Shown: piece after piece, positions 11,090 to 61,925 of the stretch | How the letters are laid out: each line of letters starts with the position of its first letter | Numbering within the stretch: the stretch's first letter is position 1 | Assembly: GCF_021869535.1 (NCBI RefSeq) | Contig: NW_026262690.1 | Coordinates: forward strand, 80,538,001 to 80,602,000 | Source: Mytilus californianus | Lineage: Eukaryota | Direction of reading: 5' to 3' | Length of the DNA: 64,000 nucleotides | Notes under the pieces: model-generated | What the model was told of the DNA's origin: nothing | Seen by the model: the letters and a program-made list of their open reading frames with translations, nothing else | Database searches by the model: none | Program-made: the position numbers and the translations under genes

Positions 11090-11439
11090 TTATCCTGATT
11101 CTAAAGAGGACAAATAATTTGCTAAACTCAGATTTTGTTCTTCTAATTCAACTATTCTTTTTCTCAGATATTTAATTTCGGCTTCAGTTCTCGTTCCATA
11201 CTCATGTATTTGACTTTGAAGTGTTTCTATTTCATCCTTTCTCTTTTCTTCCTTGTGCTGTTCTCTTTTTAAAGACCTGTTGTATTCATATAGCAGAAAT
11301 GATGCAGAGATTGCATAAGCTAATGTTTCTCCAAGTAATTTTGTACCTACGGCAAAGGCTTCATCTTCTGATAATGATTTTTCTCGTTCACCAACACCAA
11401 GTAATTTACTTTGTACTATGCAATCCATTGAATGATACC
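11090..11439 (-). CDS. OPA3: OPA3-like protein A, exon 2 of 2 (spliced product 159 aa)
   Basis: Acceptor ttttcAG at 11441-11440; A|GG completes Arg, then YHSMD..LSEDEAFAVGTKLLGETLAYAISASFLLYEYNRSLKREQHKEEKRK, matching the OPA3 core plus coiled-coil tail; stop at 11090. Confidence 0.9.
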
Positions 11440-13437
11440 CTGAAAAATACAATTAAAAATCTATCATAAAGATTTATCGGAATAAAGAGGTCATCATTTT
11501 AAAATTTAAAATTTCAAGGAGCTTATGTTGATTACCTAGTACATAATTGTCACTGATAATACTTAATGTGTCTGATATTATTTGTTATACATTTGCAATT
11601 ATATCAATTGCACAAATTTACTGTCAGTTCAATATCTAGAAACAGCTCCATCGTCATGATATAATGTATTATATTTCATTTGGTATATTTGAATTCGAAG
11701 ACCAAACTGAAGAAAATTGTCCCCTCGGTAATTGTGTTAAGAGAGACAGAGCTGAATTATGTTCCTCGTCCTAAAAAAACGTTTTCATCAGTTGTTTGCA
11801 ACCAGTAGAAAAAAACAGTTTTTAAGAATTTTAATGTCACTCATGCTTATTCCATTCCTTCACAATTAAGAAAAAGTATTTTGTTTTTTTTTTTTAATAT
11901 TTCTTAAAAATTCTTTGTTAATCAGATTATTCATAAAAATAATTTAAAAAAATGCAATCCTTCCTTTTCACAAATATGACACACATGTCACCAATAGGTC
12001 TAACAGGCTGGTTACTTAAGAATACCAAAAAAAAAAAAAAACTTTTATGGTACTGAACCTGAATTTGAATTTTGAGGCTAATAATAGTTATTATCAATTT
12101 GAACTTAATCCAAAAATTTATCAAAATTGAGATTTTCGAGATACAACAAACGTAAAGAGGCCAGAATTTTTTTTATTCTTTATAAAATACATAAACCTCA
12201 ATTTCTGGCAATTGATTCAATGTACATTTTAACCATCAATATAATATATATAAAACCTAAAACAAAAATTGAGGAACTGTATCTCCGAAGTAAATCAAGC
12301 CGAAGAAAACGAATGCTTTCAATAAATTTTTAGCAGTCACCATGAAAATACAAGATTGTATAACAAAGTCCGGGACATTCACATCATTGCAGAAGGGTAA
12401 GTCTAGTGTTAAAAAGGACATATTCAGACACAAAAATACCTAGACCATAGAAAAGGCCACGCACTAACAGTCTCAAAGATAGTTCAGATTAACCCTTTAC
12501 CGTTGAGCAAAATCTCTACATCATTTTCAAAATTTCAAGTGCAAATACCTAAAACCAAATGATGCTATATGCCCGTACATCCACCATTAACTAGAAATCG
12601 GCCATACATGACATTTTCTCATTAATTGTTCTTATGCAGAACACATTACATAAGGTTAGAATGGTGTGTTTTGAGGTGAACACAAACGGATAAACTTCCG
12701 AAAGTAAATAAATTTTTCCTGCTGAACTGTTGAAAAGATATTCTTTTTTGTTTCATATTAGCGCTAAATTGACTTAAAATCGGCCAACTGGAAATAATCA
12801 TGTGGAGCACGGGTAGATAAAGAAAGCTTGTTTTCTTAGAAAGTAGCTTACAATAATTTTCAAATGCAAATGATGCATGTTCAAATTTTTCACAATAACT
12901 CCAGCTGATGTAAAAACTGAATACTAAGTCGGCAAAATTTATGCTACTGTTTCTTTCTTTTCTAGTTTTTTTTATCAGTTTTAGCTTATTTTATATAGCT
13001 TTATGAAAGTCGGCCAAAATCGATCAGTAAACTGCAGTACACTACAGTAAGTCAAGAAGAGTAGCTTCACATTTTCTGACAATTAGTTAAGGAAAAAGAT
13101 TATAATTTGGCTATTTTTCCGCATAAATAATTAATAAAAAAAAATGTTGCACATAGATGTTGGGAATGTAACGATTTAAATGTGTAAAAATAAATTTTCC
13201 TTGGCCTATTTTATTGGAAAAACCCACACGACAAAGACATTTGTTTACAAACTATTCCATCTTCCCTTTTAATCGTTAAATAAAAGACTTCTATTTGTAA
13301 ATTCGATTCAAAGAAACGCAACTTTACACACACATATACAATTGTTTTCACTTTTTTGCTTAAATTTCATCTTTAACAGTCGTTGAGCAAAGTGAAAGTA
13401 GATGTTCTATTTCTGCACTCTGAAATTCATTTCTTAC

Positions 13438-13567
13438 TTTGAGCAACTGGCACAATAATTGAACGAAATGTTTGATTTCGTTTTGACAATACACTAAGTC
13501 TATGGACAATTGGTCGTGTAAACTGTCTGATTAGTAAAGTAACCAATTTTACGATTGGCAATACCAT
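13438..13567 (-). CDS. OPA3: OPA3-like protein A, exon 1 (130 nt; missed by the ORF track)
   Basis: MVLPIVKLVTLLIRQFTRPIVHRLSVLSKRNQTFRSIIVPVAQ then phase-1 GTAAGA donor at 13437; the AQ-x-YH phase-1 intron position matches what I recall for human OPA3. Confidence 0.9.
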
Positions 13568-13680
13568 ATTTTCGTCTGCATTGAGTTGGAACGGTGGTAT
13601 TTGATTTCCGGGAACTAGTTGTCGCGGTTTCCCAGACGCTTCACTTTTGCAATAAATAATTTTTGCTTTCTCTGGCGTAG
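13568..13680 (-). promoter_or_regulatory. Conserved 5' block of the OPA3-like genes
   Basis: TTGCAAAA..AAGCGT..AACCG(A/C)GA..AAATAC.ACCGTT.CA.CTCAATGCA shared with 17085-17194 (+), 53704-53765 (-) and 61575-61684 (+); TTCCGGGAA at 13606-13614. Confidence 0.6.
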
Positions 13681-14759
13681 GATTCTAACTCACTGCTCGA
13701 TGGTATGTTACAGAGATGTGGCCATGATCCGAGCTTACGTTTTCTCTCATTCGTAACTACTCGACCTTTTTCGGTATTCTGAAAAACTAACCTGGTATGA
13801 AAAACCGGCGATTGACCATCAAATCTCCGTTTCAAATATCTTGTCCTTTCAGACTATGATTGGCAATATTCCACTGAATATGACCATCTACTATACGATA
13901 GGGCGACTTAATTATGAAATTTCCTCATTGTAGACAATACATAGAGAAATATTAGGTAGGATCGTAGATACAGGAAAAATTATAAGGGTTGATGATGGCC
14001 ATCTGTGAGAATAAGTCAACTTGTGTTTAACTGTTTGTGTTGCACTGCCAAAGATACAAGTTAACACAGGAACCTCGATATTTTATTGTTAATATTAAAC
14101 TTTGAACAACATCAACGTATATTAGGTTTGAAACTCCCGTTTCAGGTTGTGAACAATCGCATCAATTACAGTAAACCTGTTTACAATGCAAAAGCAAAGT
14201 CTTTTAATTTGAATTTTAGCAAATATATTTGAAATAGTTTAGACCAAATGTACAGGTTGAAACTTGGTAAGGGGCTTATAAAAAATTGAAGAATATTCAA
14301 GATTAACCATTTACAAATCTCCAATTTTCTAATGAATAACACCAATGACTCCATTGGCATATGCATTATAGGCATAGCTATTACAGTTTATTCATAGAAT
14401 TGTGGACACAACATGTCAACCTGACTCCATTGGCATATGCAAACAGGCATAGATAGCAGCATTCTTTTTCTTATCATTTCTGTACTTCTTGCGTTTTAAT
14501 ATGATAACTTGCCTGGAAAAGTTAGATCTAGGTCCTTTTCCACATTTCAATACAAGTATAACCCTTTTTTAATCTTTTACTATGATATTGATATGATTAA
14601 ATTTTCTTTTGTCCATGTTAAACCGATACAAGAATCTTATCATTTGTATTTAAGGAAAAGTGCTAATTTGAAATAACGAAATACCCTAATTAACAGTTTG
14701 CCAGACAGACATAAATAACAGTTTACCAGACAGACATAAATTACGTATCTAAAATAAAT

Positions 14760-14882
14760 TTCCCGGGTGCGGGAATTTCTCGCTGCATTGAAGACCTGTT
14801 GGTGGCCTTCTGCTGTTGTCTCTTCTGTGGTCGGGTTGTTGTCTCTTTGACACATTCCCCATTTCCATTCTCAATTTTATTA
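14760..14882 (+). repeat. Short interspersed repeat; second copy at about 16095-16205
   Basis: gaagacc..tggtggccttc.gctgttgtc..ggtcggg..gttgtctctttgacacattccccatttccatt present twice. Confidence 0.7.
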
Positions 14883-15317
14883 AATTTTTATGATTTAAAA
14901 CATACATGTCTTACACTTTCCGTTGATAAATTTAAATTACCTTTATATTCAAATTTATTATATTTGAACTTTTCAAACGAAAATGGCAAATCAGTATAAA
15001 CAATGACCTTTTAAATGTTTGCAGTTCAATGAAGATTCTGAAGATAATATAAAAATAGGGAGATGTGGTACGATTGCCAATGAGACAACTATCCACCAAA
15101 GTTCAAATGAAGTGGATGTAAATATAAAATATATATAATTAAAATTTAAAGAAATAGAAAAAAATGTAATAATAAAAACTATTAGTAGACAGCTCTCTCA
15201 CAAGAAAAACACCCATAACTGTAAAATATAAGGGCATCGCTACAAGCAAGGGGACACATTCAATAGCATCAACTCAACACGAACAACAAACCCTGCAATC
15301 AATACAAAAATAGGGAA

Positions 15318-15554
15318 ATGTGATATGATTGCCAATGAGACAACTATCCACTAAAGTTCAAATTAAGTGGATGGGTAAGTTGACAGATATGATCGGAGAC
15401 CACTAAAACATGTATCCCATGAGTTGAGATAAGGACACCAAATCGTATTGGGGTTTTCTCATTGTTGAAGACCGTACGGTTGCCTATAATTGCTTTTATC
15501 CACTTTAATTGAACTTTGATGAATCGTTGTCTCATTGACAATTAAACCACATCT
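15318..15554. repeat. Inverted repeat of about 58 bp formed by two opposed copies of a short repeat
   Basis: atgtgatatgattgccaatgagacaactatccactaaagttcaaattaagtggat (15318-15373) vs its approximate reverse complement at 15497-15554; further copy at 15058-15120. Confidence 0.65.
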
Positions 15555-17194
15555 TGTTACTCGCGATATTTTCGCGAACTGCCCTTGAGAGCGAACTTTG
15601 TGACGATTTATTTTCGCGATTGTCGAACGTTGTTGATGTATTTGTTAAACAAGACATCGAATGCTGACATATTCTCAATGATCCATATTCGCGTGTCCTT
15701 TCGCTCTTGAAAATTTGCTTGTTTACAGTTTTGCTGACTTTCAATTTTAGATCAAATAATGATGATGCTAACTTAAAAAAACAAAACTAATACATGTGCT
15801 CCTAACAAAGAACTGAATACTGATTTTCTTAATTATGTTTTTAGATAATCCAGCCAGGTCATATCTTTTCTAAGCGACATTAAATATTTATCATAGATTA
15901 AATCTGTTATCAATCAACCTGCTTGACTTGCAAATAATCATACGAATAACAGTGGGGTGGGATGTACATTAATGGAATAGCAACTCAACGACATCTACAG
16001 GTCGAAATAAGGTCTTCGACTATACATAAGTGAATCAATACTATTATGTCAAGCCCTAAACAGCTGTTTTACCAAAGAATTAAATACAGAAATTTGCTAA
16101 GTTTGCATGCTTGAAGACCCATTGGTGGCCTTCGGCTGTTGTCTGCTCTATGGTCGGGTCGTTGTCTCTTTGACACATTCCCCATTTCCATTTTCAATTT
16201 TATTTAAAATTGTTGGAGGAGTTATTGACAATTGGGACCTTCCTTTATTGTAAATTGACCTGGTTTGACCATCTGGACATTAAGTCTTAGGTTACACAAA
16301 TTGCAGTGCTCATTTTCAATGTATATATATATACTAGAGAGAGATTTAAGAAGTCTTACTGCTGATCGTTGAAAACTGTAGGATAAGTTGTTTACCTCCA
16401 TAAAAACAGGAAATCTCTCGTTTCCCAAATGTAGGGACGTTTTGAACTGATATTTATCCATAATGTTATTAATTCTTTATTCTTGTTTTAATCATGCGGC
16501 TTTTTGTGTTGTTTGTCTTGCTTAATCTTTAGTTTTTTTATGTCGTGATTGTAAATTGTGGCTTTTCTTTTTTTGCCATGATTTTTCCGTCTATCTCCAG
16601 CCTTTGGTATCTGTCGCCACTCTTTTTCAATATAAGAACAGTATGGGACAGAGCTAGGAAAATTTTGAAAATTAAGACAATAGAACTCATCATTGCTATC
16701 TATAGTCACTTCTCTTTCATATCAACATTGTTTAAGATTTTCCGCTTATCTTGAAAAAAATTTCAATCAGCTTTACTAAGATATTTAGAAAAGTGACAAT
16801 CTGAGGAAAAGTTGTAATAAACGTCAACGTAGACAGATCTTTTACGGAATTTTCCAATTGTCAAAGCCATACTCCCGTCATCATTTTCTTGATATTTGAT
16901 ATAGTTACCTCATTAGACTTAACACCGAATATTTACTTACCATGAGAAACATGCTTTTTATGCATCATTTAAAATTTATGGTATACTTAAACGGATTTCC
17001 TACTTTTCCCCGGCAATACAAGTCATACAGATGGACTTCTTTTGTTCACCCAGTTGATAATAATAGAATCCCAGGCTAGAGAAAAACCTAGATGTTGTTT
17101 GCAAAAAGTAAAGCGTTAGGATAACCGAGACTTCATTAGATTCAGGGAAGTAAATACGACCGTTTCACCTCAATGCAGTCGAAGGTATTCAGTC

Positions 17195-17435
17195 ATGGTA
17201 TGGCCAATAGCAAAATTGATTCTTCAACGTGTTGCATTACTTGTCAAAGAATCTTCAAGAAGAATTAAAAAAAGAAGATCGTCAAACCCCAAAGAAGACG
17301 AAAATGTAAATTTGCCAATTTTTCATTTGGTCACTTTATTTATCAAAGAGAATATAAGACCAGTTGTAAATAGATTTAGTAAATCGATTAAGCAGAATCC
17401 TCAGTTTCGTGCAGTCATTGAAAGAGTTGCACAAA
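17195..17435 (+). CDS. OPA3: OPA3-like protein B, exon 1 (241 nt, duplicated N-terminus)
   Basis: MVWPIAKL..RRIKKRR..VNLPIFHLVTLFIKENIRPVVNRFSKSIKQNPQFRAVIERVAQ then phase-1 GTAAGA donor at 17436. Confidence 0.85.
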
Positions 17436-24579: not shown

Positions 24580-25052
24580 GATATAATTTAATGATTTCAA
24601 GATCACAAAGTATATTACCAGTGAAACAATTATCAGACGAACAAGCGTACGATTTAGGAACCAAAATAGTTGGTGAAACATTAGTATATGCAATTTCTGC
24701 TGGACTTCTGTTAGCTGAATACAGGAGGTCTTCAAAAACTGATCAAATCAAGGAAGAAAAGAGAAATGTTGACATAGCAACACTTCAAAGAAAAACACAT
24801 GAACATGGAATGACTACAGAAGAACAAGACACTCAAATTAAAGAACTGAAGAGAAAAATAATTGATTTAGAGGAAAAATACAAGTTTAGCAGGCAGATTG
24901 TCTTCCTCTCTTTAATCAGTGTAATGTATAATGTAAGAAACTGCTTTTATACTAAACTAATTGTAAATGTCATTATTTTGTGCCTACAAAGTTTTCTTAT
25001 ATCAGTGTCTAAACAACATGGAATGAAATATCAATATCACATCACTAAATAG
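24580..25052 (+). CDS. OPA3: OPA3-like protein B, exon 2 (237 aa spliced if read to the stop at 25052; 3' end uncertain)
   Basis: Acceptor ttttttcAG at 24578-24579; A|GA completes Arg, then YNLMISRSQSILPVKQLSDEQAYDLGTKIVGETLVYAISAGLLLAEYRRS..KEEKR, coiled coil. Confidence 0.8.
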
Positions 25053-28000
25053 GTTATGGAATCGCTGCAGGCATTTTGTTATTTGAATACAACAGGCCTC
25101 CAAAATATGATTTGATCAAAGTAGTAGTGACACAAATTGTGAAATAGCACTGCTTCAAAGACAAAAACAAGAATATGTAATTATAACAGAACAACAAGAA
25201 ACAGAAATTAATGAATTGAGAATGAAAATGTTTTATTGAGATGAAAGAATTTTTTTACAAAGAAAAATGTTTTCATCTCTAAAATTAGAATATTGTGTGA
25301 TACAATATTACTCATTTATATTTTTTTGGGCCTGACTTAACCTTACACATATTACATGTACGAGTGTTAAGATGATATAGAATCAAATTATTAAATAACC
25401 TACCTTTCAAAATAGAATAAAAAAGATATATTATTGTGTAATCTATGACCAGAAGTGTGTTATTCAGATCATTTTAAATATGGGAATAAAGCAATGAAAT
25501 TTAAGCAAAATGTCCGCAATTTTGTGAGGATAAAGCATTTTGATATTGAGGTTCTATAAAGTAAATGTAATAGACATGAGAAACAAAGAAGTATTTTAAC
25601 TGAAGTTTACATCAATTAATTTTATAATATTTTTTAAAGATTTAAATCTAGAAATATTTATGTATGAAAATAATGCAAAACCAAAATAATTTATACAATT
25701 TCTTTATATATTACTAGTAGTCTCATGCTATAATGATTTTTCATCATTTTAGGTTGCAAATTTCTGCAAAAAATGTTTTTTTTTATATATAGCTATGAGC
25801 TTTACAAATGTATTTGAATGTTTTACTGCCATTTTTAATGGATGTTAGTGATGAAATCTGTCTGTATTTTCTGACAATTTTCTAGTCTTTCGACTTGTTG
25901 AAAGGGTATATTTGAACCACAATACTTTTGTTTGATCATAAGAAAATTTAAATCGTACATGTGTACGCAATGTGGAGTCTGAAATTATATTCTGGTGACT
26001 TCTTTTTTTGTTAACGAAGGAATATCCATGGGTTATCTCCTTGTATCTAGGATTGATAGGGAAGATAACTCTATTATTATTCTTACACAAATGTTCATAG
26101 ACATTCATTGATCATAAATCTTGATACATGTATGTTTTACACTTTTGTTTTGCCACCGTTATGAACTGAAATTTATTTGAAATTTTAACAACTACATATG
26201 AAAACTAATTATAATTCTTAATAAGCACCTTTTATCTGTAATATAAAATAATGTCTCCCATGAAAAAATGTTCGCGGACACTATTTCATCATGAAATACG
26301 GTAAAGGACAGTATTTCACTATAAAATAGTGTCCTTGTCCATGAAATTGTATCACCTCCTTCTTGACAATATTTCACTATAAAATTCTGTCCATGATAGT
26401 ATTTCACTGTGAAACACTGTCCTTGAAAAATATTTCTTAATCCAATTATGTCTTTCCTAACAGGAAATTGTGAGTGTTTTTAATATTTTATTTGAAAAGT
26501 ATGTGTGTATTCCATAATTATTTTATAAAATATTTATGCAAGGTTTGTTTGTTATTTTCAATCAAATAAAACACCTTAAGGTTCCACTAAAGTCAAAATA
26601 TAGGACACTTCATAAACATCGAAACTTTGCCTGTATTTTTCAACCTATAATGAGTAAAGTCCTAAACTATGAGAACATATGTTCATTTAAACATCCTTAA
26701 CATATACACACTGTGTAAATTGTAAATAAACTTGAAATTGTTATGTTGTAGCCAAACCGGTTCTTGGGGTGAACACTAAATTTTCCAAAAAATCTGGAGG
26801 CCTGCGAGACGACTTAATTTGCTTAAAATTGGTATGGACGAATACTGTTACATGTAATATCATTATCCAAAATAACAAATGTTTATATTCTCCTTTTCAT
26901 GAGACAAATTTCATGACAATCCATCTATGAAATATTGTCTTTATATATGTGACAGTAAATTTGTAAAATCAGGGATTATGCATAATCACTAAAATCATAA
27001 GTGGTTAAATATAATCCCTGAAAATGACCAGTGAATTTACATAATCACTGAAAATATCAAGAATTATTTTACAAATTCCCTGTAATATTTTCAGGGATTA
27101 TCAATAATACAAAGATTCTCTGTTTGGTACAAATAAATCATATGTATCACCTCTTTATTGTTTAAGTGGACAGTTCTCATTCCTTGTCCATTTATCAATC
27201 TTATTAAAATGAACATCTTTTCTGAGAATATTCTATTCAACTGTGTTAAACCACATTAACTCATAAACAAATAAGCTTTCTAAGTTGAAATTAATAACAC
27301 CAGCATAAATGCACAGATCATGTAACTTGCCGTACAACAAATGGATTGAGAGTTTGAGAACAAGGAATTCGAATTAAGCAAAGAAATGCATCTAAACGTC
27401 CAGACACACAAACAAAACACATGCTTGACAGATTGAAGACGATTGTGGAGGAGGCTGATATACCGATTCCGTATGTTGATCTTGAAAAGGGAGACCCAAA
27501 AAACATAATGGCCATCGTTCATAAAAGGGCTGAAAAGGATATTGCCTGACTACGAAACATGAAATTATGCTTAGATAATACACAAGGAATCAATTTGAGA
27601 TGTCTGATTGACCTTTTTAGCACCTTCAGATGTTTCTAATGAACCCTTTATTTTTCATCAAAGTGCAGTAAAATCAGATTCAATATGTGAAGGTTAAGGG
27701 TTTTTTTAGGGGGTGGGGGTTTGCCAAAAAAAAAGGATAAGCAGAGCAAATTTTCAATAGTAAAGAGTCGGGATGGGGTTTACCAAATAGAAAATAATAG
27801 GCAAACAATAGAATAAAGGGCTAAAAAATTAAGAATAGACAAAAATAGACCGAAAAAATAAGAATATAGAATAATAGTGTGCTAAAATATACATAATAGA
27901 GAATAATGAGCAAAATAAATATAGCTTAGAGAAAAAGAAAAAAATATCTAAACAATACAAGAATAAACAAATAAGAGATCCCCATCCAGACCCTCGTAGT

Positions 28001-29470: not shown

Positions 29471-29518
29471 GATTTTACTATTTTTTTGGTGATGTTGTAC
29501 CCTTTTAGACTTGCTTAT

Positions 29519-29551
<33 letters not shown>

Positions 29552-33020: not shown

Positions 33021-33093
33021 ATGATGTTTACTTTTGGACTTGCTTTCTTTCAACTGATGATTATGGCTACAGCCGACTGCAGTCCAAAACTTG
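33021..33093 (+). CDS. C1q-domain-containing gene, exon 1 (signal peptide)
   Basis: MMFTFGLAFFQLMIMATADCSPKL, hydrophobic leader ending A-T-A; phase-1 GTAGGT donor at 33094. Confidence 0.7.
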
Positions 33094-33660
33094 GTAGGTT
33101 TAAAAGGCTATGTTTCACCTGATACCATGATCTCTATGCGCTATGGGACCATGCAACTTCTTTTTGAGTGGTCGTTGATTCCTTAATGACTTGTTTAAAA
33201 AGAAAATTTCTGTCCCTTTTTTTAACTCATTTAGAAGCTTTGGGTCCTGAATGCTCTTCAACTTTGTTCTTTGTTAATGAGAGCGCCACTGTTGAGTCTT
33301 TTGTAGACGATACGCGCGTCTGACGTACAAAATTTCAATATATGATGAGTTTATATACCAGTTGCAGTCCAAATTTTCTACCCTTCATTGTGGTAAACCA
33401 TACCACAATGAAGGGCTATTGTTGATGTGTTCTATTTCTAAACCATGCATGACATATTTGCCACTGGACCTGAACAACATCCAATCAGTTTATCAATGTA
33501 ATTGGGTGTTTTATATAGAAAGCACATCATAATGATTATAATAGCACTACTTCTAAGAAGTTGTATTGATAAAATGAAATTTGCTTTATGAAAGAATTCA
33601 CCTTTTCAATTCATGATTGTCAATGAATAGTATTTATTTATTGTAAACTTTTTTATGCAG

Positions 33661-33714
33661 ATAATGCAGTAATTGAAGACCTTTTGACGATGCTTGTAAA
33701 ATATAAAAGATCTG
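33661..33714 (+). CDS. C1q-domain-containing gene, exon 2 (short helical segment)
   Basis: tttttatgcAG acceptor at 33660; (D)NAVIEDLLTMLVKYKRS; phase-1 GTAAGT donor at 33715. Confidence 0.7.
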
Positions 33715-34931
33715 GTAAGTTACTTAAACGATTAATTTACATGAGCTGGCCTTAAGTAAAGAAAAGGATGCAGATTTTTAAAATTTTACGGAATTTGAAA
33801 ACAAGCAGTACTTGCTTTTGTGTTATTTCACTTTCATTCATACCCTGTAATACTCAAAGTAAATTTAAAGTAAGTTTACTCTTTATATATGAATATTGTA
33901 CAGGCATGATTTTAATGATGAATTTTGTCTGAATATGATTAGGTTTGGAATAAGATGTACTGGTGGGGTCTTTTTGTTGTTGGTTCTTTTAAAACATTTT
34001 ATATTATCAGTTTGGTAGATTTTTAGGGACTTTTCGGAGTTGATGCTTTTGAGCATTTTTTATCAACAGTCTGGTAGGTTTATTGTTCAGCCTTATTAAT
34101 TCATAACAAATTATCATAACTTACTTATTACTAGAAAATATCCCAATTTAGACTGATGCTAAATTCAGAGGAATAAATACAGTCAAATTAGAAAATTCAA
34201 TCAATTACTACAATGGAAGAAATTATTAAATTTTCATCAAGTTGGAAATAAGAAATTTACAACATGTGAAATTATTGATTTTCATGGTACTTGCTGTATT
34301 TAATTATTTGTAATATTTTTTTAAGAAGAAAAAAAGGCGTTACTTGTTTTGGTTACAGTTAGAAACAGTATATGTGTTAATCAACATATGTGAATAAGTC
34401 ATTACAGCTAACAGGAAAAATAAATATGCTAGAACAAGACTTTTGGATATGAAACTGTCATTAGCAGCGTCTATTTTGTTTTAAGAATGATCAGCACAAT
34501 TTTACAAAAGCAATGTATGCAAATGACCTGAAATGATCATACTAACCGTCATCCGTAGCATTATAATCTAACAGCCCATAGAGTTCATTCTGTGTAATTT
34601 ATAATTTTATATTAACAAAAGTTGATAGCACATGTTAGTGATATGTTTTGTTGAGTAAAAGGTTCCTTTAAAAAATCTACAGGATTAATGACACTTTTCA
34701 TGCTGTCAATAGGGTTAATTGAAGAGTAATGAAAAGGATATTCCCCATTACCCCTCCTGGAAAAATCTCTCGCAACTCTTCTTAATCGATTTATGAGATT
34801 TGAACATCGTAAAACTACTGTCACCTTAATGCGCACTCATGAATTATGGTCTTTTAAGACATGTGAAATGTAATTTTCACAAAAGTAGTGTATAAAAACT
34901 TTGGTGTTAAATCTTGATTTCTATATTCCAG

Positions 34932-35342
34932 TAGATTTAAGAAACACCAGAAATTGGAGAGATCTTCCTGCCTTTACTGCATCCTTATCATATACCAAGA
35001 ATATTAATGCCAAAGAAACTGTGAAGTTCGATAAAGTTTGGACAAACAATGGAAATCACTATGATCCTAACACGGGAATTTTCATAGCTCCAAGGGAAGG
35101 ACTGTATCATGTTTCTACTACAGTCATGTCAGTAGAAGGAAAAACGGTTTGCAGGCATTTGGCTGAATGAGACTAGGACAGTTGGTCTGTTTCCTGGTAC
35201 CGGCTATAGTGAAGCTACTGCTAACATTGTGTTACATCTAAGAAAAGGAGACAAAGTTACAGTGAGAGGTAGTGGTAATCATCCTTATCTTTACAGCAGT
35301 ACTAGCCACTACAGTATATTCTCTGCCTATCTTATAGCATAA
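34932..35342 (+). pseudogene. C1q-domain-containing gene, exon 3 (globular C1q) with one frameshift near 35140-35162
   Basis: PAFTASL..ETVKFDKVWTNNGNHYDPNTGIFIAPREGLYHVSTTVMS, then in another frame GIWLNETRTVG..YSEATANIVLHLRKGDKVTVR..YSIFSAYLIA*; AATAAA at 35341. Confidence 0.85.
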
Positions 35343-35444
35343 TAAAAACACACGAAATTAATCAAGTTTTACTTTCATAAAAAAAAAATAGAATTCTTTC
35401 TTTTGGTTTTATTTCTACAAAAATGTTCGAAATGGTGCATTTTT

Positions 35445-35900
35445 TTACCTGAGAGGTATCATCAGCTCAGTAGTCAGTACTTCGGTACTGTCATGACTTA
35501 TTGCAAACCTTTCTTTAATTGCCCGTTTTTAAATTTTTGAATTATTATGAAAATAAGTTTCAACTCCCTCAGGCAAAGTTGACTTTAGATGGATTTAGAT
35601 ATTACTTTACGTCCTTTTTGGTCATATAGCTCTTCACCTGTTTCGCTTCTTGTACATCCTTGGCTTTCAAAATACTCGGCTTTTCAGCGTTCCTGATGAA
35701 GGTAAATGTAGAAAAGTGCTACTGGCGTATCACATTTATAAGTGTTGTTTTCATTTTTTACAGTACAGGGTCGATACTGCTGCTGGTGGACTATCAATCC
35801 CCGGAGTTATCATCAACTCAGCAGTCAGTACTTCGGTAGTGACATGATTTATAGTAAACCTTTCTTAAATTGTGACATTTATAAAGTGCTGTTTTCATTT
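35445..35900 (+). mobile_element. Retrozyme-like repeat of the same family as 3288-3670 in opposite orientation, with degenerate hammerhead
   Basis: ggtatcatcagctcagtagtcagtacttcggtac..aaggtgtttcaactccc..gcgttcctgatgaaggtaaatgtagaaaagtgc; absent from copy 1 at position 85. Confidence 0.55.
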
Positions 35901-36600
35901 TTTGCACAGAGACATGCATATTGTTGAATATAAAAAAGGAGATGTAGTCTGATTGCCAATAAGACAACTATTAAACAGAGTGCAAATGAAGCACTTATAG
36001 GTAACCATACGGTCTTCAACATTGAGAATTAACAATACCGTATAGTGAGCTATGAAACTCTCCGTCATTACAAAATGTGAAACAATTCAATGGGAAGAAC
36101 CAGTGGCATGATCTATGACAAAAAAAATGTTTGTTATACCAAAAGACAAACAGCTACAAAAAAAAAACATAGAAAACAAAACACTGAGCAACAAGAACCT
36201 CTGGTGTACTATCAGTCCCCGGAGTTATCATCAGCTCAGCAGTCAGTACTTCGGTAGTGACATGATTTATAGTAAACCTTTCTTAAATTGTGACATTTAT
36301 AAAATGCTGCTTTCATTTTTTGCACAGAGACATGCATATTGTTGAAAATAAAAAAAAAGAGATGTAGTCTGATTGCCAATAAGACAACTATGAAACAGAG
36401 TGCAAAGGAAGCACTTATAGGTCACTGTACGGTCTTCAGCATTGAGAATTAATAATACCGTATAGTCAGCTATTAAAAAATGTGAAACAATTCAATCGGT
36501 TGAACCAACGACATGATCTATGACAAAACAATGTTTGTTATACCAAAATACAAACAGCTACAAAACACAACATAGAAAACAAAAGACTGAGCAACAACAA
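35781..36600. repeat. Local tandem duplication, 2 x about 420 bp
   Basis: Units begin ctggtg(g/t)actatca.tccccggagttatc at about 35782 and 36201 and stay near-identical. Confidence 0.85.
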
Positions 36601-36614
36601 CTTCACAAAAATCA

Positions 36615-48458: not shown

Positions 48459-49383
48459 CTAATATCTACCATGGCGCTTCCAGCACCTTTCGTTAACGTC
48501 AGAATTAGCCGCCGCAGTGGCACCACCAGACATCAAAGAGTGCAAACCAAGATTTAACTCTGGAGCAACTAATTTCAAACGCTTCAGTATGCATTCTCTA
48601 GCTGTGCTATAGCTGATCGGTTCATTAACCTGAATTAAACCAGACTTTTTCTTAGATTTGTACAATGGACGAAACAAATACTTGTCCGAACAAATATCTA
48701 AATGCGCCATTCCAATATACTTAATAACATGTCAAATGGACAAGCCATTGTTCGACCTTTAGAAACTAAAATTCATCTCCGGCTCTATATTGGTCAGTTT
48801 TGCTCTTTTTAATCTTTACAATTAAATAGTTATCTTTAAGAATAATGTTGTTACGCTTCAGATTACTCAACTCACTAAATTTAAGAAAAGCGCTATAACT
48901 CAGTAAAATCATAGCCAGATCCTATTGTTAAATCATTTGACCCTTGAAACATAGAACATAAACTTATCAAATTATCATTGAAGACAGGATATTTCTTTAC
49001 AACTGGAGCTTTAGAAGTACGTTTAGCCGACTCAACTATATTTTTTACAAAAGCATTCTCTGTAGGATCTAACTGACCTGACATGTAATGAGCCCATTTT
49101 ATAGAATAAAATCACTATTGATTGTACTGTATGTAGCACCTGAATCAAGCATGCACTAAATATAAAGAAACATGAATAGGCGATGTTGGCAAATAAATCA
49201 AATTATGTTCATGCGAAAATGTGTTCCATTTTTTAAAAGCATAGTTATATTTTCTAACAGTACTGTCACTTCTGGCATCAAGCAGTCTCGTCGAAAAACT
49301 ACCCACCAAATCATGTAAAGGATGATCCTCTCCGATACCACTATCCTCCACGGCTTCTGTTACAAACCGTCCCAGCTTTAACC
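48459..49383 (-). pseudogene. DIRS tyrosine recombinase, frameshifted and 3'-truncated
   Basis: DSTVRKYNYAFKKW..HVSLYL, KWAH..DPTENAFVKNIVESAKR, KKSKTDQYRAG, LFRPL, GLHSLMSGGAT (HxxR Arg replaced by Met), KRHGR then stop; catalytic Tyr region not seen. Confidence 0.85.
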
Positions 49384-49406
49384 CTGTACAAAAATACAAA
49401 ATAAAA

Positions 49407-50011
49407 TCAATCAAATCTGATCTTAAATGCAATCAAGGAAAATTTCATATGTTTCCCAAATACACCATTATTTCCCCTTCCGGGAACGACAGGACTAATG
49501 TTCATTATATGGTGTTTGTCTGTTATGAAATGTTTCAAATTTCCAAAAATATCATGTAACATCAACCAATAAGGTGAAGAATACCACAATGGAACTACCA
49601 GTGTACAATTTGCCTCATCACTTCACAGTTTTCTTATAACCTTACAAACAACATTCGGTGGTGGTACTAACCAATTGTTTTCACTAAACCAGTTTTGTGA
49701 GAACGCATCTATTGCTTCTGTGTTCTTACACCAGCACTTAGAATTAAATCTCGAACATTTAGCGTTGTAATCTGTAGCAAATCTTTCTATTTTATGCCTA
49801 CCCCATAACTTATCTGACATTTGAAATACAGATTCTTCAATACCCCAGTCGTCGCAATCTGAATATCTACTCAGACCATCAGCAATTTTATTTTGTTCTC
49901 TTGGAATCCAATGTGGTTTAATTTTTATATTGCTCTCTGAACATGAATAATATAGCTCACAAGCAATATTTTGAAGTTCCGATTTTTTGCTACCAATTTT
50001 AACTATACCAG
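49407..50011 (-). pseudogene. DIRS RNase H C-terminus and Dam-methyltransferase-like domain, broken
   Basis: HWIPREQNKIADGLSR..DCDDWGI..WGRHKIERFATDYNAKCSRFNS..AIDAFSQNW..NNWLVPPP..CTLVVPLWYSSPYW. Confidence 0.75.
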
Positions 50012-52246
50012 TTAATTCTTATTATCTGTATTCAATTTTAAACAATGGTTTTCTAAACATCTTAACGAACTTTTATCTGTTCTGCTAACTGCTTCAAGCT
50101 CACGCCACGTTGAACTTTTACCACTTTCCAATATTGTCCAACTACCTACTACATTATTCAAACTGTTACCTGGTAATTCTAGACCACAGTCAGTCAGAAT
50201 TTCTAACGATTCACAGACCGACTCAGCACATATGCTATCAACTACAGGCACAATATAGCCCCCAAAACCTACTTCTGAGGCATCAGTGAACGCCACTAAA
50301 TCACATACATCTGACTCATGCAGATCATTACCTTTCTCATTTAACTGCGTTACTGAATTTAACCAGTATCTGAGCTCCTCAACAGCTGGAGCTGTCAGAG
50401 CAACAAGTGACTTCCAACTTTCCCTTAACAGTATACAGTTATACAATTCTCTAGTTCTAAGCCTAACCAAATTACCTAAAACAGCTTGCATTGATATAAT
50501 CTGGCAAACAATTCCGGCAACAAACTTTGCACTGTGCAAAATTTTACCTTTTCCGACACCGAAAAGTATTTTACTGATAACATCAACTAATCTTTCTATA
50601 CGTTCACTGGAAACTCTAAGTTTCCCGAACTCCATATCCCAAACTAAACCTATCCAGGTCATATTTTGCTGTGGATACCAAAGACATTTTTCTTCAGCTA
50701 TTAAAAAACCAAATTCAGACAAACTAGATCTTATATACGAGCTAGTTCTTTCAGCTGATTGAAAATCATTTGCACCTCCAAGCCCATCATCAAGATACAT
50801 TATTATCTTCAAACCCTGATTTCTCCAGTATTTTATCACTTCCTTAAGAACTTTGGTAAAAATATGACCTGCACTGGCCAGACCAAAAGGAAAAACATTA
50901 AATACAAAGTACTTTGTTATACCATTGAAATCCCAACTGAAACCTAAATAAGTTTTATGTTCCTCTAATATTTCCAGATGGTGATATGCACTCTTAAGGT
51001 AATATCTAAACAAAAAATTTCCCTTTTCAAACAATTCTCTTGCAACTGCACCGTCTTCAAATTTAAACCTAAACTGGTGTATACATTCGTTGATATGCAT
51101 ACAATCCAAAACTAAACGGGGCTTCTTTGATCTACTAAAAGCTACCGTTAAAGGATTAACCACAAAAGGTATATCGTTAACTTCTGAAATGCAACCTTTT
51201 TCTGTCAATTTTAAAATCTTGCCAATAACGAATTCCCCGTTATCCCTAGCGGATTTATTATTTCTCAAAATAACATTATCTGGTAGTACTTTAAATGGAA
51301 TACCGTAACCCTTTTCTATAACTCTTAAAATATACGTGCTTGTGTCTATGTCTCTCCATTTGTGTATTGATTTTTTCAATTTACCTACAGGTGTGATTAA
51401 ACTTGAAGTTACCGTTACCTGGCTAGACACCTGTTCGATACATTCATGCTCGAGTAAACAAATACTATCATCATTCATGACATCTTTTAAAGACTTATCA
51501 GTTAGGTGATTCGTATTCACCTGAAAACTATTATCATGCAGTAAATCTGAACAAATGCTACTTAATTTATTAACATTGAATAAATTAGTACTTAACTTTC
51601 GTTTTTTCTCTGGACATTCAAATTTCCAGTGACCAGGCTTGTAGCAAACTCCGGGCCTCCCACTTGCTTTTCCATTTGTGTCGTTATCACTAGAAGTTGC
51701 TGTTGAAGTTGGCCTGCTATACGGCGTTGGTCTTTTCTTCTTAGCTTTCTCTGCTTTTGTTTTTCTCTCCGCTCGTGTCTGAACTCTCAGAATTTTTCGA
51801 TCGTCCTCGGAATCATCTGCGAGGGGATTCGCTGTATATTCCTGTACCACTTTCCATCCCATCTCGGACGAATCGGCCATTTTAACCAACTTCTGTCTGT
51901 AGCGTATAAGTTGTATACCTTCTGCTATTTTCTGCTTGGCTAAACCAGCACTTGGGTCCCTGGACTCCAGACTAGCATCGGCTTCCTTCAAAGTTACGCT
52001 AAGCTTGCGGTTGAATTCGAATTGGTCTTCACAAGACTTTCTTTGAAACTTGTAGTCATCATTCACCGAAAGTTCATTTTGTAATCTATTCATTTGTAGC
52101 TCTGATCTCTCCTTCTGTTGATGATCGAATTCCTGTAGTTTTATTGAAAACATCCCTTCCATTTGTGACAATAAATCGTTCTGTGATTTTCAAATTTCTT
52201 CCCCGACAATCCGCTTAACACTATTCTCGATGTCCGGATCCATCAT
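50012..52246 (-). pseudogene. DIRS gag plus RT/RNase H (719 aa open stretch; upstream ATG at about 52246 followed by an in-frame TGA)
   Basis: gag KLVKMADSSEMGWKVVQEYTANPLADDSEDDRKI; partial zinc knuckle CYKPGHWKFEC; RT KKPRLVLD, YYLKSAYHH (motif A Asp replaced by Tyr), YLDDG; RNase H FTDAS, SSTWRELEAV. Confidence 0.85.
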
Positions 52247-53703: not shown

Positions 53704-54210
53704 ATTTTCGTCTGCATTGACATGGAACGGAAGTATTTAATCTCCGGGAACTAGTTATCTCGGTATTTCCGAAAAAGTATGTTTCCGTGATAATTAACAT
53801 TGTAATGTCATTTACTGTGGGATGGATGAATCAAAAATAATATGTAAGTCAAATGGATACAAGAAGGGGTTTCGGTCAAAAGCTGTTACATCGAGTGCAG
53901 TCAGATTGGTACCGCTAATGTTATTACTGACACGTGTTGAATATTTTTGTAACTAAAAAGGCTTAACTCATAAGTCTGAACTACTAGTACCACATCATTT
54001 GACTCTTTATCTATTTTCTCTATCTTTTTCACCATAGTCGTCAATTACCAGGATATTACACCCCCCGAAATCGTATTAAATACAAAACACAACTACTTAC
54101 TGAGATGTCATTAAAAACTTGACAACCGAATGATATCAGTTCAATGCAATGAATCCTTTACAGTTTACAAAACACAACATAGAAAACCAAAGACTGAGCA
54201 ACAACACATA

Positions 54211-54248
<38 letters not shown>
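54211..54248. repeat. (TG)5(TA)14 microsatellite
   Basis: Directly visible. Confidence 0.9.
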
Positions 54249-56061: not shown

Positions 56062-56822
56062 GGATGTATTCTTCTGATGTTTCAGTCTCGTTGAAATCTC
56101 GTTTTGGAATTATTTCCAAAAGATGAGATACAAGTGGAAAATATCAATGAACTTAAAAAATATAATCAAATTAATATGAACAAATTGTGTACTTACAATA
56201 AGTAGTTTTGAGTAATAAAATTTTCAAATTCTATACCCAATCCAGTCAGTGTCATCAGCCAAAATGTTGAGAAAATGGGTGCGTGGTACAAAAAAAAATA
56301 TTTTACCTAAAATATGTACATCCGATATCATTTTTTCTTTTCAAAATTCTTAGATATGTATTTTTCCAATCATTTATAACAAAAAAGTTGAAATAATATG
56401 CTTTTTGTTCTAAAAAAAGAGTAAAAACCCTAATTTACCAAATTGACAGCATGGTCAATTTGACACAAAAAAGCAACAACATTTTATAAAACTTTCAAAT
56501 ATTAACACCAACCTATAGTTTTTTTAAGTTAAATTTATTCAGATTGATCCACTTCATCTTTAGTGAAAGTATGAAAAAAAGTTTAGTTGTGAAACTGTGA
56601 TTTTTTTCATGAAAATAGCCCAACAATGGGTATAAATTGATGAAAAATAGAAAAATCATTAAAAAAGGGTACTTTCAAATGGCCGTAGCAAAAAAAAAGA
56701 AGTGCACTACCATATGATTTTTTCTTCATCAATTACTTTCTTACAGTCATATAAACCAAAAAATCAGGTTTAAGAAAAAAGTTTAATTTTCGAAATGTTT
56801 GGCTCCTCAGAAGTGTACATCC
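56062..56822. mobile_element. Kolobok-type MITE, 761 bp
   Basis: TTAA at 56058-56061 and 56823-56826; TIR GGATGTATTCTTCTGA vs TCAGAAGTGTACATCC (14 of 16 match). Confidence 0.75.
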
Positions 56823-59559
56823 TTAAGTGTTATTTAATGTTTATTGAATTTGACTGAGGGAGTTGAAACTTCAATTACTTTATCATTTCTTAATTTTCCT
56901 ATGAGGATTTTTTTAAAAGCATATAAAGACCGAAGCACTGACTACTGAGCTGGTGATTCACTCGGGGAGAACAGCCCATCAGCGCATGTGTATTGACCAA
57001 GTGCTAGTAAATGAAAATAACACTTTATGGATTTATTTCGTCCAGAATCCTTTTCTGAAATAGCTATCATCAGGAACGTTCAAACCTAAATATTTGAAAG
57101 CTGGAATCCTGTTCTAATCTCTTTCTCGTTATTTCTGTCGAGCATTCAGAGATTACTTTGATACTTTAAATTCAAATCATGAAATGAGTGAAATGTGTCA
57201 GCGATCACGTGCACAACGGTTTGAATTAGTATTTTGAAGTATACTCTTGAGTTAAAATCAAAATTATTTTCAACTTATTTTATATAATATGTTAATGCCT
57301 AATGTTGTGTTTACAATTTCTTCTCGTTTTGATTTAATATTTTGTTGAATTTTAGTTTTGTATACTGTTGGGTTTTTTTTTTGGCGTTTGTCTTCTTTTG
57401 TTTTGCCATGGCGTTGTCAGTTTGTTATCGACTTTATGAGTTTGAACATTGCTTCGGTATTTTCGCCTCTCTTTTAAAATCAATTTTTTTGATTATGATT
57501 TGTATGTAGTACTGTTTAGGTGGGATAATAAAATGTTTGCCGAGCGTTTTCTCTCGATGAACAGATTCGTCAAAGAACCACCAACTGTTACTTTTCTGTT
57601 TTCAAAGATGGAATGATCGAGACGACTTTGGTGGGGCAGAAATTGTTTAAAAAGTTTATGAAGCTCAAAAAAGTATGGGTTCATTTTTCGAAATTTGTGA
57701 AACAGATGATTCCAAATAAAAGGGAGTAGTTCGAACTACTTAAATGTATTTTCTAGAATTACAGTTGATACTTTGAAATTGACTTTGGAAATTGTGTTTT
57801 AAGATATTTCTTTGTTAGTTCAGGCTATATAGTATTAACTTGTTCGACTTGATAGAATATTTTTAAGTCGTTTGATAAACTAGCTTGGTAACACATTCCC
57901 TCCAAGTGTCGTAAATATTGGACACGATATATTTAGAAGATACTATAAATGTTTAGGAATTGATGTAGTGACAAGGTTCCTACTTTGTTTAAAGGCATTT
58001 TCATCGGATGTGTTGAGTGTCGGTTTTATCCAGATTAGATATTTTCAAGTGCTGCTTTTGTGGGGACTACTTATAAAAATATCAAACTTAGTTAGAATCG
58101 TATTTCATGTTCAGTATATATTTTGAATTCCACCCTTTTCTTACTACAGTCGTCTAGATTTTGACCGTATATGTAAAGTTTCTTAGCAAAAGCTTTAAAT
58201 CTGTTGATTCTGTCAAGGATGAAAAAAAATTCTTAATCGTTTAATTATGGATTATATATCTTTTGCATTTACTATTAGATTTAGAACATCCACAATTGGA
58301 AGCTTTACTTTGAGATAAGTTTTAGGAGGGTTCAGTTGAATTGTGATACATTGATTGACAAGACATGCTGTACTTATGACTAACATATTTTGTTTTATAT
58401 TTCCAATTTGTTGATATATGAATAGTTTACATTATGCTGATGTAATGTGATTTTTATTCTAATGTTCAGAAAAATCTTATCTGGTTCCAGATTATGTTGC
58501 TATTTTTTGTTATCATACTAAGCGACTTTGCAGAACTTTTTTTTATCGGTAATGAACGGAAACTGTAATTGTTCAAAATTAAGTGGTGAAATCAATTCAA
58601 ATTGGCGAGAGATAAGTAGAGATACTATTGGTACACTTTTTTTTTGTTTCTTTATTGAATTCTTGATTGGGTTCCGTTTAAGTATTCTCGAATCTGCAGT
58701 ATTTAGTTAATATTTCTGTCAAGTTATGAGGGGTGAAAAAAAATGTGTTCCCTGTAACTGATATATAGTTAAATTTGTTTTCAAACTGTAAATTACCGCG
58801 ATACAAGTATTGTACACCTAGTTAAAGAACAAGTAAAGGGGCTTGATTAGGCTTTACATCTGAAGAGCATACGGAATTAATTCAAGAGATACCAGTTTAT
58901 CATTAGAATTGCGTTACAAAACTTAATTAAAAGAAGTCTGAAGCAATACAATGTGTACAAAATGACTTCTTTTTATTTCACCCAGCTGCTTATTGGATTA
59001 ATCTAATAAATTTGATTATTTGATTATCAAAATAGTTAGATATATGTTATTTACATCTCACTGAGTACTTTGAACCAGCATGTAGCTGTATACTCTAGAG
59101 TTGAGGTTTATGTTCTCCTGTGTTTTTTTTAAGTTATGGTGTATTAAATTTGAGATAACATCTCTTATATGTTCCATCAGTCTCTCAATTTTAGGCCAGT
59201 TTGTGTACCAAATCTTTAATATGACACACAACACCTATTCTTGGCACCCATTCCTTTCCACGTTATATTTTTCACTTTCAAACATGTATGGGGGTGGGAT
59301 CAATAAACCCTTATTTACACATCAGATTGTACTTGTTACCGGAACTTTGGATGCACCAAACTAGGTACTTCATATCTGAGAAACAGACAAAATATGCCCT
59401 CAATTTTAGGATTCATTCATATATTTTTGTATTATTCAAAATTATCAGTTAAAATGTGTTCTACAAGGATCACCAGTCCTTCAATTTTCATTGGATACAT
59501 AAATTACCAAAATAGAGTCTACATAGATTGATATTTACACCTATGCTTAGGAACTATTT

Positions 59560-59845
59560 TGTTTTAGATATTTACTGCTCACCGAATAATACTTATTACC
59601 GGGTTTGTACTAACAGGAGCAACACGACGGGTGTCACATTTCGTGTAGGGTCTGCTTACCCTTTCGGCGCACCTGAGGTCACCCCAGATTTTGGAGAGGT
59701 TCGTGTTGCCTAGTCTTTAATTTTCTATGTTGTATTTTGTGTTCTATTGTTTGTCTGTTTGTCTTTTTCTTTTTTAGCCATGGCGTTGTCAGTTTATTTT
59801 CGACTTATGAGTTTGAATGTCCCTCTGGTATCTTTCGTCTCTCTT
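59560..59845 (+). mobile_element. Penelope-like family 3' UTR copy
   Basis: caccgaat..ttaccgg..gcaacacgacgggtg.cac..tctgcttaccctt..gcacctgag.tcacccc..gagtttga.tgtccctctggtatctttcgtc, as at 40180-40447. Confidence 0.65.
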
Positions 59846-61684
59846 TTTTCAGTATGTTCTTTTTGACCGGGCCCGATTTGGTGGTGTTGCGTCTACAAAG
59901 TGTATCCGAATTATTTTGCAAAGAATTATTATTAAACCTGTGCTAGGGACCGTCATAAACTTGCAGTGAGGGGAGATGTGTTAAAGGCATCATTGTGACT
60001 TTGAGATGAAGAACACCAACAAAGTGCTGTTCCTTTGCTTTTTGTGATTTTTACTGTGCATGTTCTGATTTTGTGTCATTGATGGTAACCCCATATCATT
60101 TGGTTTTTTTTTATCACTTATTAAAAAAACTGACCAAAAATACTTTATTATTTTTCACTCATTTTATCAAACTTGATTTCTTTTTGCCATTATGATTTAA
60201 ATTGTATTTCTATATCATGTGAAAATGAGGTTAAATTACTTTGAGTAACAACTAATTTTAGAAACTTCAATTTCAAATATTTTTTAAAAGGATGCAAGGC
60301 AATTAAATGAAAAGAATTGGAAAAACATAAACAGTCTGAGAAAACTTACAACTGTTTATTAATTTATGTCTAACTTCAGTTATTATCCTATGACTTGGCA
60401 TTTCTGAGCGAAACAAAAAACAAGACAAATAGATTTTTTTACAAGAACGTACGCTTCGCTTTACTCATGATAACTATCAGAATTCTTATGAAAAACTTCT
60501 GCAGATTTCAAACCTACTTTCACTAAAAACTTGAAGAATGCACACACAATTGCCTTTGAGAACTTAAAAATAAATAATAAAATACGTCAAATATGCTGCT
60601 TGCTATATAAAAAAAAAAACCAATTCATATAATGTCAGATATGTGAACACTGCTGAGGTACCTAGACCAAGAACCTCAAGTTATGGTGAAAGATCTTTTA
60701 GATTTTAATCAGCACAAATATGGAATTTCCATCCCAATGTGGCAAGAACTATGACTTCTTTTGATTTAATTAGGAATTATATAAATTCTTAGTATGGGAG
60801 AATAATGTAATTGCAGTTCAAGCTGTTTTTATCAAGTGCTGCCTCAAAGCTGAAATTTCCTCCTTTTTTCTGGCCTTTTGCTCTGCTTTTTTTTTTGCAT
60901 TAAAATATATAGCTGCTTTTAAATGCCAGTGCTTTCTTAATTATTTTTTTATTTTTTTTTTTTTTTTTGGTTTTTATTACATTTTTTAAATTTTGATATT
61001 TCAGTGATTGCTGGTTCTCCCATTAAATGTACATAGAGGTGTTTACCGCATGGGCATGACCCTGGAGGTTCAGAAATCAAGAATACTGTGCTTTCATTTT
61101 ATTTGCATGCCTTTTTATTTATTTGCATTTATATGAAGCTCCATGATTAGAGTTCTTCAGAGCTCATGTTTCATTTGTTATAGTGTACATATTAGCCGAC
61201 TTTGAATAAAGTTTATTACTAACTTATGATTTTATAGTAATTGGTTAATCCTCACCCCATTCTGTGCTCTAACCATGTATGGTTATTTGGATCATGCGCT
61301 TTTCCTTGCTGTTCGATTTTGTTCGCATGTCTCTTTTTAATGAGTCTCTTTTTGGTGCTTGATGTCATCCGTTGTACTTTTCAGTAGTTTTGGTATTACT
61401 CATTTATTCAGTATCTATTAAGTGTTACGGTTATACTTTTTTTCGTGTTCTTTAAGACAGCTACTTATACGGACTCCGTACTTTTATACAGGTAACATCT
61501 GCTCCATGTCAATGTGATAATAATAATGAATACTTTTTATTTCACCCAGTTGCATTAAAATTTCAGGCTAAAAAAAAACACAGAAGTTTGTTTGCAAAAT
61601 TCAAGCGTTTGTGTAACCGAGATTACCTTGATCACAAAAGTAAATACTACCGTTCCACCTCAATGCATCAATGCAGATATAGTC

Positions 61685-61925
61685 ATGGTATTACCAATAG
61701 CAAAATTTTTTCGACAACAAGCTAAATTACTTATCCAGGCGTCTTCAAATAGAATTAGAAAAAGAAGACAGCTCCAACTGAATGCAGACAATTATAAGGA
61801 ATCATCAATTGTAAAATTGATCAATTTACTAATCGAACAGTTTAAAAGACCAGTTGCAAATAGTGTTAGTGAATCGGCAAAGCAAAATCCAAAACTTCGT
61901 TCAGTTTTCGTAGGAATTGCTCAAA
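61685..61925 (+). CDS. OPA3: OPA3-like protein B', exon 1 (241 nt); exon 2 not found in the window
   Basis: MVLPIAKFFRQQAKLLIQASSNRIRKRR..SSIVKLINLLIEQFKRPVANSVSESAKQNPKLRSVFVGIAQ; phase-1 GTAAGA donor at 61926; same length as exon 1 of B. Confidence 0.8.

Follow-up and report, generated by a model that had tools for sequence, protein, structure and literature searches.

Normally, no more than one or two copies of OPA3 are present, and the gene has been linked to the shape of mitochondria and, in humans, to optic atrophy and Costeff syndrome. Why, then, does a stretch of 64,000 nucleotides (nt) from the mussel Mytilus californianus, referred to here as the window (JAKFGE010000004.1 of GCA_021869535.1, approximately positions 80,538,001-80,602,000, in the same orientation), carry four OPA3-like genes around a C1q-domain gene? 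We suggest that the window forms part of an expanded array of OPA3 paralogues which arose through segmental duplication, that the encoded proteins have a role at the mitochondrial membrane that can be proposed from homology, and that the C1q genes are passengers. To this reading as a whole we assign a probability of roughly 0.7.

The four genes, A(-), B(+), A'(-) and B'(+), each match the Pfam OPA3 family (PF07047) and consist of two exons. Two-exon solutions reproducing the database proteins exactly were sought with a script, and one GT..AG, phase-1 solution was recovered per gene, the predicted coding sequences (CDSs) of A, A', B and B' being identical to the RefSeq proteins P0001, P0004, P0014 and P0013, respectively. 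Every exon 1 ends in CAA A/GTAAGA, where the slash marks the exon boundary, while every exon 2 is preceded by a pyrimidine-rich tract and AG. Gene A (LOC127738649; 159 amino acids (aa)) comprises exon 1 at 13567-13438 of the minus strand (43 codons plus 1 nt, with the phase-1 donor GTAAGA) and exon 2 at 11439-11090, including the stop codon, and A' (157 aa) likewise comprises exon 1 at 53703-53574 and exon 2 with its stop codon at 45475-45132, also on the minus strand. On the plus strand, gene B (LOC127738643; 237 aa) is encoded at 17195-17435 and 24580-25052 and gene B' (LOC127738644; 200 aa) at 61685-61925, with its second exon, solved against P0013, outside the window at +66593-66954. The first exons of B and B' both encode a doubled N-terminus.

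The array exceeds the window. When the fetched flanking loci are included, the gene order in M. californianus is a C2-domain gene(-), C(+), C1q-1(+), A(-), B(+), C1q-2(+), A'(-), B'(+), C1q-3(+) and P0005(-), such that a motif of a plus-strand OPA3-like gene, a plus-strand C1q gene and a minus-strand OPA3-like gene occurs three times, in the same order and orientation in successive units, and the array totals at least six OPA3-like and three C1q genes. Gene C, located outside the window beside the C2-domain gene, encodes P0012 (164 aa, plus strand), which is named an OPA3 homolog, while P0005 (150 aa, minus strand) derives from a gene model spanning 133 kb. Self-BLAST comparison showed the OPA3 copies to share 68-72% nucleotide identity, confined to approximately 500 bp around each exon, with similarity gone beyond approximately 300 nt from the exons. 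The original prediction, made from the window alone, is borne out in these respects: the four genes form two head-to-head pairs at the positions proposed and match the Pfam OPA3 family, the seven OPA3-like exons visible in the window are open, with GT-AG splice sites and phase-1 introns as the exact CDS solutions show, and the DNA flanking the exons is diverged and riddled with transposable elements, including a reverse transcriptase reading frame in an A' intron. The unit of a pair plus a C1q gene, thought to be present twice, is repeated three times.

Membership of the OPA3 family is supported at several levels. Against the Pfam OPA3 model (cut-off: 25.7 bits), translated exon 2 reaches 58.9 bits for A, 50.1 for B and 55.9 for A', and the exon-1 translations of B and B' match model positions 1-39, that of B' at 27.6 bits and that of B alone, at 24.4 bits, just below the cut-off. 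The full-length proteins are, furthermore, annotated with PF07047 in the database. A phmmer search with gene A against 1.8 billion representatives returned 592 matches, with at most 37% identity outside Mytilus, and the named matches include the OPA3 proteins of Trichuris, Strigamia, Ptychodera and Tegillarca (e-values: 1e-19 to 1e-22) as well as that of a green alga. The AlphaFold2 model of A (predicted local distance difference test score: 90.3) is all-helical, with helices at residues 3-30, 32-57 and 68-158, and residues that are near-invariant across 45 OPA3 sequences are retained (P4, K7, L8, L11, P19, L66, A71, G75, E81 and E95). As such, the mussel proteins resemble OPA3 of human and CG13603 and CG43998 of Drosophila in their Pfam domain, their length of approximately 150-200 aa and their succession of an N-terminal helix, a central hydrophobic helix and a long C-terminal helix, and they share 30-37% identity with hemichordate, nematode, centipede and ark clam (Tegillarca) proteins. 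They differ from OPA3 elsewhere in that at least six copies are clustered, rather than one or two being present, in that they sit on a long stem, are weakly constrained overall and have a coiled coil that is evolving nearly freely, and in the doubled N-terminus of the B-type copies.

In the phylogenetic trees all Mytilus copies form one clade (support: 100/100) on a long stem branch outside the other OPA3 proteins, which, on sequence grounds, fits co-orthology of the copies to animal OPA3. Within this clade, orthogroups are well supported for A (M. californianus and M. coruscus), A' (M. californianus and M. edulis), B' (M. californianus and M. edulis) and C (M. californianus, M. trossulus, M. 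edulis and M. galloprovincialis), while orthogroup B, in which the M. californianus protein is placed with Medu_200 and Mtro_197, is looser. The plus-strand copies C, B and B' form a class with 87/89 support. The minus-strand copies A, A' and P0005 do not form a resolved clade, but their monophyly is not rejected by the approximately unbiased (AU) test (p-AU: 0.40).

The arrangement, too, is shared among species and is old, and the synteny that had been put forward as a check recurs in M. coruscus, M. edulis and M. trossulus, both for the head-to-head pairs and for their linkage to C1q genes. A is located head-to-head with B exon 1 in M. coruscus, the latter being 91% identical to its M. californianus counterpart, while in M. 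edulis A' is convergent with a C1q gene and head-to-head with B'. In M. trossulus the C2-domain gene, C and a C1q gene are followed, 23 kb further on, by a head-to-head pair encoding proteins of 161 and 197 aa at the positions of A and B.

Whether these copies are maintained was assessed from the ratio of nonsynonymous to synonymous substitution rates (dN/dS; Nei-Gojobori method, with 95% bootstrap intervals and the P0005 CDS left out). The orthologues of C (M. californianus-M. trossulus; dN/dS: 0.26; interval: 0.14-0.50), B' (M. californianus-M. edulis; 0.34; 0.19-0.67) and A' (M. californianus-M. edulis; 0.46; 0.26-0.83) all have upper bounds below 1 and these three genes are clearly under purifying selection, while the constraint on A and B is uncertain. 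A ratio of 0.40 was obtained for the C-B' paralogues and of 0.63 for the B exon 1 orthologues of M. californianus and M. coruscus. By region, the N-terminal helix and central hydrophobic segment mostly show values of 0.2-0.6, and the linker and C-terminal coiled coil values of approximately 0.7 or above. We do not claim positive selection in the coiled coil, where the highest value (2.7, for A against M. coruscus) rests on one synonymous and 11 nonsynonymous changes.

Reading-frame survival provides a second measure. In a neutral simulation using the base composition of the window, a gene had a chance of approximately 1% of retaining an open reading frame (ORF) at 0.15 substitutions per site. 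A real neutral control lies directly after the stop codon of B, where a decayed partial copy of an OPA3 exon 2 (25055-25227, plus strand), identified by tblastn and translation, holds five in-frame stops. The low neutral survival and this stop-riddled fragment together indicate that the genes have been kept, under a constraint which is weak and uneven. The proposal that the copies are maintained therefore holds in that the ORFs are open beyond neutral expectation and C, B' and A' are constrained, but the constraint is weak, particularly for A and between paralogues.

Transcript evidence covers genes A and B. The splice joint of A (11438/13437), which skips 1998 nt with CT..AC ends, corresponding to GT..AG on the minus strand, is found exactly in raw RNA-seq reads of run X9 and also in contigs from two other studies, which contributed three additional runs. 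The contigs extend as far as 13649 and 13665, giving a 5' untranslated region (UTR) of approximately 80-100 nt within the start region at 13568-13665, and in run X9 all reads over the A exons have their first mate on the plus strand, which is consistent with a minus-strand transcript in a standard stranded library. Expression, proposed as a further check, has thus been obtained for A, spliced as predicted, but B is barely seen.

A block of approximately 90 nt just before the ATG (13576-13640, 17120-17190, 53712-53780 and 61600-61680) is conserved in all the paralogues and in the M. coruscus, M. edulis and M. trossulus orthologues. It contains a core of CCGGAA, as in gene A, or TTCCCGGAA, whose likeness to an ETS/GABP or GAS site is one of consensus only. 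In the window, the 19-nt core of this motif matches at five places, where none is expected by chance, and it is confined to the four genes. The B-type genes have an additional N-terminal segment, which seems to have arisen by tandem duplication of the final part of the 5' UTR together with the first approximately 26 codons (61769-61787 and 17270-17320). Within exon 1 of B', the conserved 5' UTR motif recurs in degenerate form (CCGTTCCA.CTCAATGCAG) and is translated as the linker, and the old start region in gene B reads GACGAAAATGTAAATTTGCCAAT; these relics indicate that a former 5' UTR was exonised. In the M. edulis B' orthologue (approximately 9950-10060 of L008), as assembled, the first N-terminal repeat has a stop codon and a change of frame, and the annotated M. 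edulis protein (P0015) starts differently, so the doubled N-terminus is not uniformly preserved. An annotated isoform of B' (X2; P0018) uses an alternative first exon at 62952-63131 of the plus strand, in which the OPA3 N-terminus is replaced by a hydrophobic, signal-peptide-like start.

The C1q genes have fared differently from one another. The single C1q domain (PF00386) in the window, at 34889-35339, is split over two frames and matches the Pfam model at positions 1-65 (51.9 bits) and 84-127 (23.7 bits) on these two reading frames. It belongs to C1q-2 (33021-35342, plus strand), which has a signal-peptide exon at 33021-33093 and a C1q-domain exon at approximately 34931-35342. An alignment with C1q-1, C1q-3 and the C1q gene of M. 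edulis shows that 2 nt near 35149/35150 are missing from the assembly sequence of C1q-2, resulting in a premature stop at 35168-35170, while its signal-peptide exon and acceptor site look intact. Both of its paralogues lie outside the window, are intact and encode 180 aa. C1q-3 follows B', while the stop codon of C1q-1 lies 16 nt before position 1 of the window, of which positions 1-85 (plus strand) represent the C1q-1 3' flank and are 83% identical to that of C1q-2 (35360-35443). The window had indeed been supposed to open on the 3' flank of an unseen C1q gene. For C1q-1 no two-exon solution was obtained and a three-exon search gave 11 equally valid ones, and only its signal-peptide and domain exons are reported. 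Compared with the C1q-domain-containing (C1qDC) gene expansions of bivalves (PMC6835236), these are similarly short, secreted-type genes of approximately 180 aa with a signal-peptide exon, a single C1q-domain exon and nearby paralogues. They differ from the genes described there in lying approximately 35 kb apart, interleaved with OPA3-like pairs, in being homogenised relative to the flanking genes, and in that the copy in the window is frameshifted.

How the array arose can be proposed from these comparisons. An old inverted duplication would have given rise to the minus-strand class (A, A' and P0005) and the plus-strand class (C, B and B'), after which segmental duplication would have repeated the unit of plus-strand OPA3, C1q and minus-strand OPA3 genes three times, presumably before the lineages of M. 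californianus and of the M. edulis complex diverged. The neutral divergence is, however, unequal across the unit. Identity among the C1q copies amounts to 85-89% for the domain exon and to 78-85% for introns and upstream DNA, as opposed to approximately 70% among the OPA3 copies, and a single en-bloc duplication therefore requires later gene conversion. C1q-2 is, moreover, more similar to its two paralogues than to the C1q gene at the same position in M. edulis and, given that the C1q positions are common to M. edulis and M. trossulus, the copies were homogenised after the duplication. Among the OPA3 genes, C and B' show a synonymous divergence (dS) of 0.64 in the N-terminal part and of 0.03 over the last 62 codons, and a tract of gene conversion is apparent between 15294-15661 of L005, carrying C, and B' exon 2, approximately 73 kb apart. 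After the duplications, gene conversion may thus have made the C1q copies, and at least one tract of the OPA3 genes, more alike. The original prediction of an inverted duplication followed by a tandem one is compatible with the tree, in which the plus-strand class is supported and minus-strand monophyly is not rejected, without being proven by it, whereas a duplicated unit whose parts did nothing but diverge does not fit the C1q identities.

Other features of the window are mostly repetitive. An ORF of 719 aa (50012-52171, minus strand) with a reverse transcriptase domain (RVT_1; e-value: 4e-12) and a weak zinc knuckle is located inside the 8-kb intron 1 of A', on the same strand, together with a neighbouring ORF of 95 aa (49145-49432, minus strand), and the two look like a fairly intact retroelement. 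Five further ORFs in the window that resemble transposon fragments gave no Pfam match. Between A and B, repeats at 14700-15500 and 16100-16300 show read depths in the thousands in every RNA-type run, from both strands and with many loose ends, and the segments 14788-14889 and 16111-16214 are 89% identical; the probable source is abundant transcription of transposon-derived sequence present in many copies across the genome. At 1451-2270 a sequence is repeated in tandem with a period of approximately 165 nt (75-80% identity between copies), and immediately downstream of C1q-2 (35783-36604) approximately 418 nt are duplicated at 89% identity.

Several observations weigh against an array of maintained OPA3 paralogues. 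The orthologues of A in M. californianus and M. coruscus have a dN/dS of 0.91, with an interval of 0.37-3.5 and six synonymous and 19 nonsynonymous changes, and both paralogue pairs, A-A' and B-B', give a ratio of approximately 0.78. No branch in the tree is longer than that of gene B, which has also lost 7 aa from its linker. The loss of 2 nt after 24873 has shifted the last approximately 14 ancestral codons of B and its former stop (24922-24924) out of frame and has given it a new, hydrophobic tail of approximately 50 aa read from the former 3' UTR. The only RNA found for B is a single contig over exon 1 (17180-17299), in run X3. B and C1q-2 look partly degraded. The A and B proteins are, furthermore, only 57% and 43% identical to their positional orthologues Mtro_161 and Mtro_197, respectively (dS: 0.5-0.6, compared with 0.2-0.33 for the other orthologue pairs), which argues against clean one-to-one descent and for a more complicated history of the first unit. 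Lastly, while the comparison with metazoan OPA3 that had been called for united the Mytilus copies, a separate canonical Mytilus OPA3 was not found in searches that were word-limited or returned unnamed proteins: a word-indexed search with the family alignment returned Mytilus array members only, Tegillarca OPA3 as query returned only itself, and the names of 20 representative HMMER matches included no other mollusc.

Much of this would be explained if a single OPA3 gene were functional, most likely C, which is located beside the C2-domain gene, bears the OPA3 homolog name and has the lowest dN/dS, with the other copies being redundant and drifting towards pseudogenes. The ratios for A and the paralogues, the frameshift, linker deletion and scant RNA of B, the decayed exon-2 fragment adjoining it and the stop codon in the first N-terminal repeat of the M. 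edulis B' orthologue would all follow. This explanation nevertheless seems unlikely, as all six ORFs are open despite a dS of 0.3-0.5, where a survival of approximately 1% per gene is expected, A' and B' are under significant purifying selection, the orthogroups are kept in M. edulis, M. trossulus and M. coruscus, and A is spliced and expressed in three studies. The threefold motif and the adjacency conserved in M. edulis and M. trossulus might, on the other hand, be taken to mean that the OPA3-like and C1q genes constitute a co-regulated module, coupling for example secreted pattern recognition to mitochondrial responses, which was duplicated through selection on the pair. That is very improbable. 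C1q-2 is frameshifted while the flanking OPA3 genes are intact, C1q and the minus-strand OPA3 gene next to it are convergently oriented at a distance of approximately 10 kb, with no shared promoter, and the two gene types have different divergence histories (85-89% versus approximately 70% identity). Tandem duplication is, moreover, known to have spread C1q genes throughout the genomes of bivalves (PMC6835236). No support for a functional link between OPA3 and C1q was found in this analysis, and given the convergent genes, the differing histories and the frameshift, passive linkage is the simplest reading; the C1q genes were most likely carried along by the segmental duplication, as opposed to being functional partners. 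An assembly artefact, whether an uncollapsed haplotype or a mis-join, had been named as a possible source of the two units, and is rejected on divergence and synteny, the copies being approximately 70% identical, and near the exons only, each having its own orthologue in the assemblies of other Mytilus species, and RNA contigs matching A specifically.

What the expanded array of OPA3 paralogues may do can be approached through homology. Mammalian OPA3 is reported to be a mitochondrial outer-membrane protein whose overexpression fragments, and whose knock-down elongates, mitochondria (PMC3643898, citing Ryu et al. 2010). By homology, the mussel proteins would most likely serve in mitochondrial membrane anchoring and in modulating fission and morphology, inserting into the mitochondrial membrane as their homology to the mammalian protein suggests, and the paralogues would differ mainly in the exposed, fast-evolving C-terminal coiled coil and in expression. 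A more specific reading, to which we attach little weight, is that paralogues in which the anchor is conserved while the exposed coiled coil diversifies have been retained for a lineage-specific mitochondrial process. Its basis is confined to fast evolution, copy number and lineage, and candidate processes include a sex-specific treatment of paternal as against maternal mitochondria in doubly uniparental inheritance, sperm mitochondrial morphogenesis and a mitochondria-based immune response.

The array genes are predicted in RefSeq/UniProt for M. californianus, M. coruscus, M. edulis, M. trossulus and M. galloprovincialis, under names ranging from "OPA3" to "uncharacterized protein", which lowers the novelty that had been supposed. 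In the literature library searched, no paper joined OPA3 to Mytilus, mussels, oysters, molluscs or doubly uniparental inheritance. Mussels have an unusual mitochondrial inheritance. A conserved array of six fast-evolving OPA3 copies in these animals is itself unusual, and represents a lineage-specific expansion of a known family. As it stands it is a descriptive case of gene-family expansion, which offers a natural series of proteins that retain the presumed membrane-anchoring parts and vary in the exposed tail, and is mainly a lead for the mitochondrial biology of mussels.

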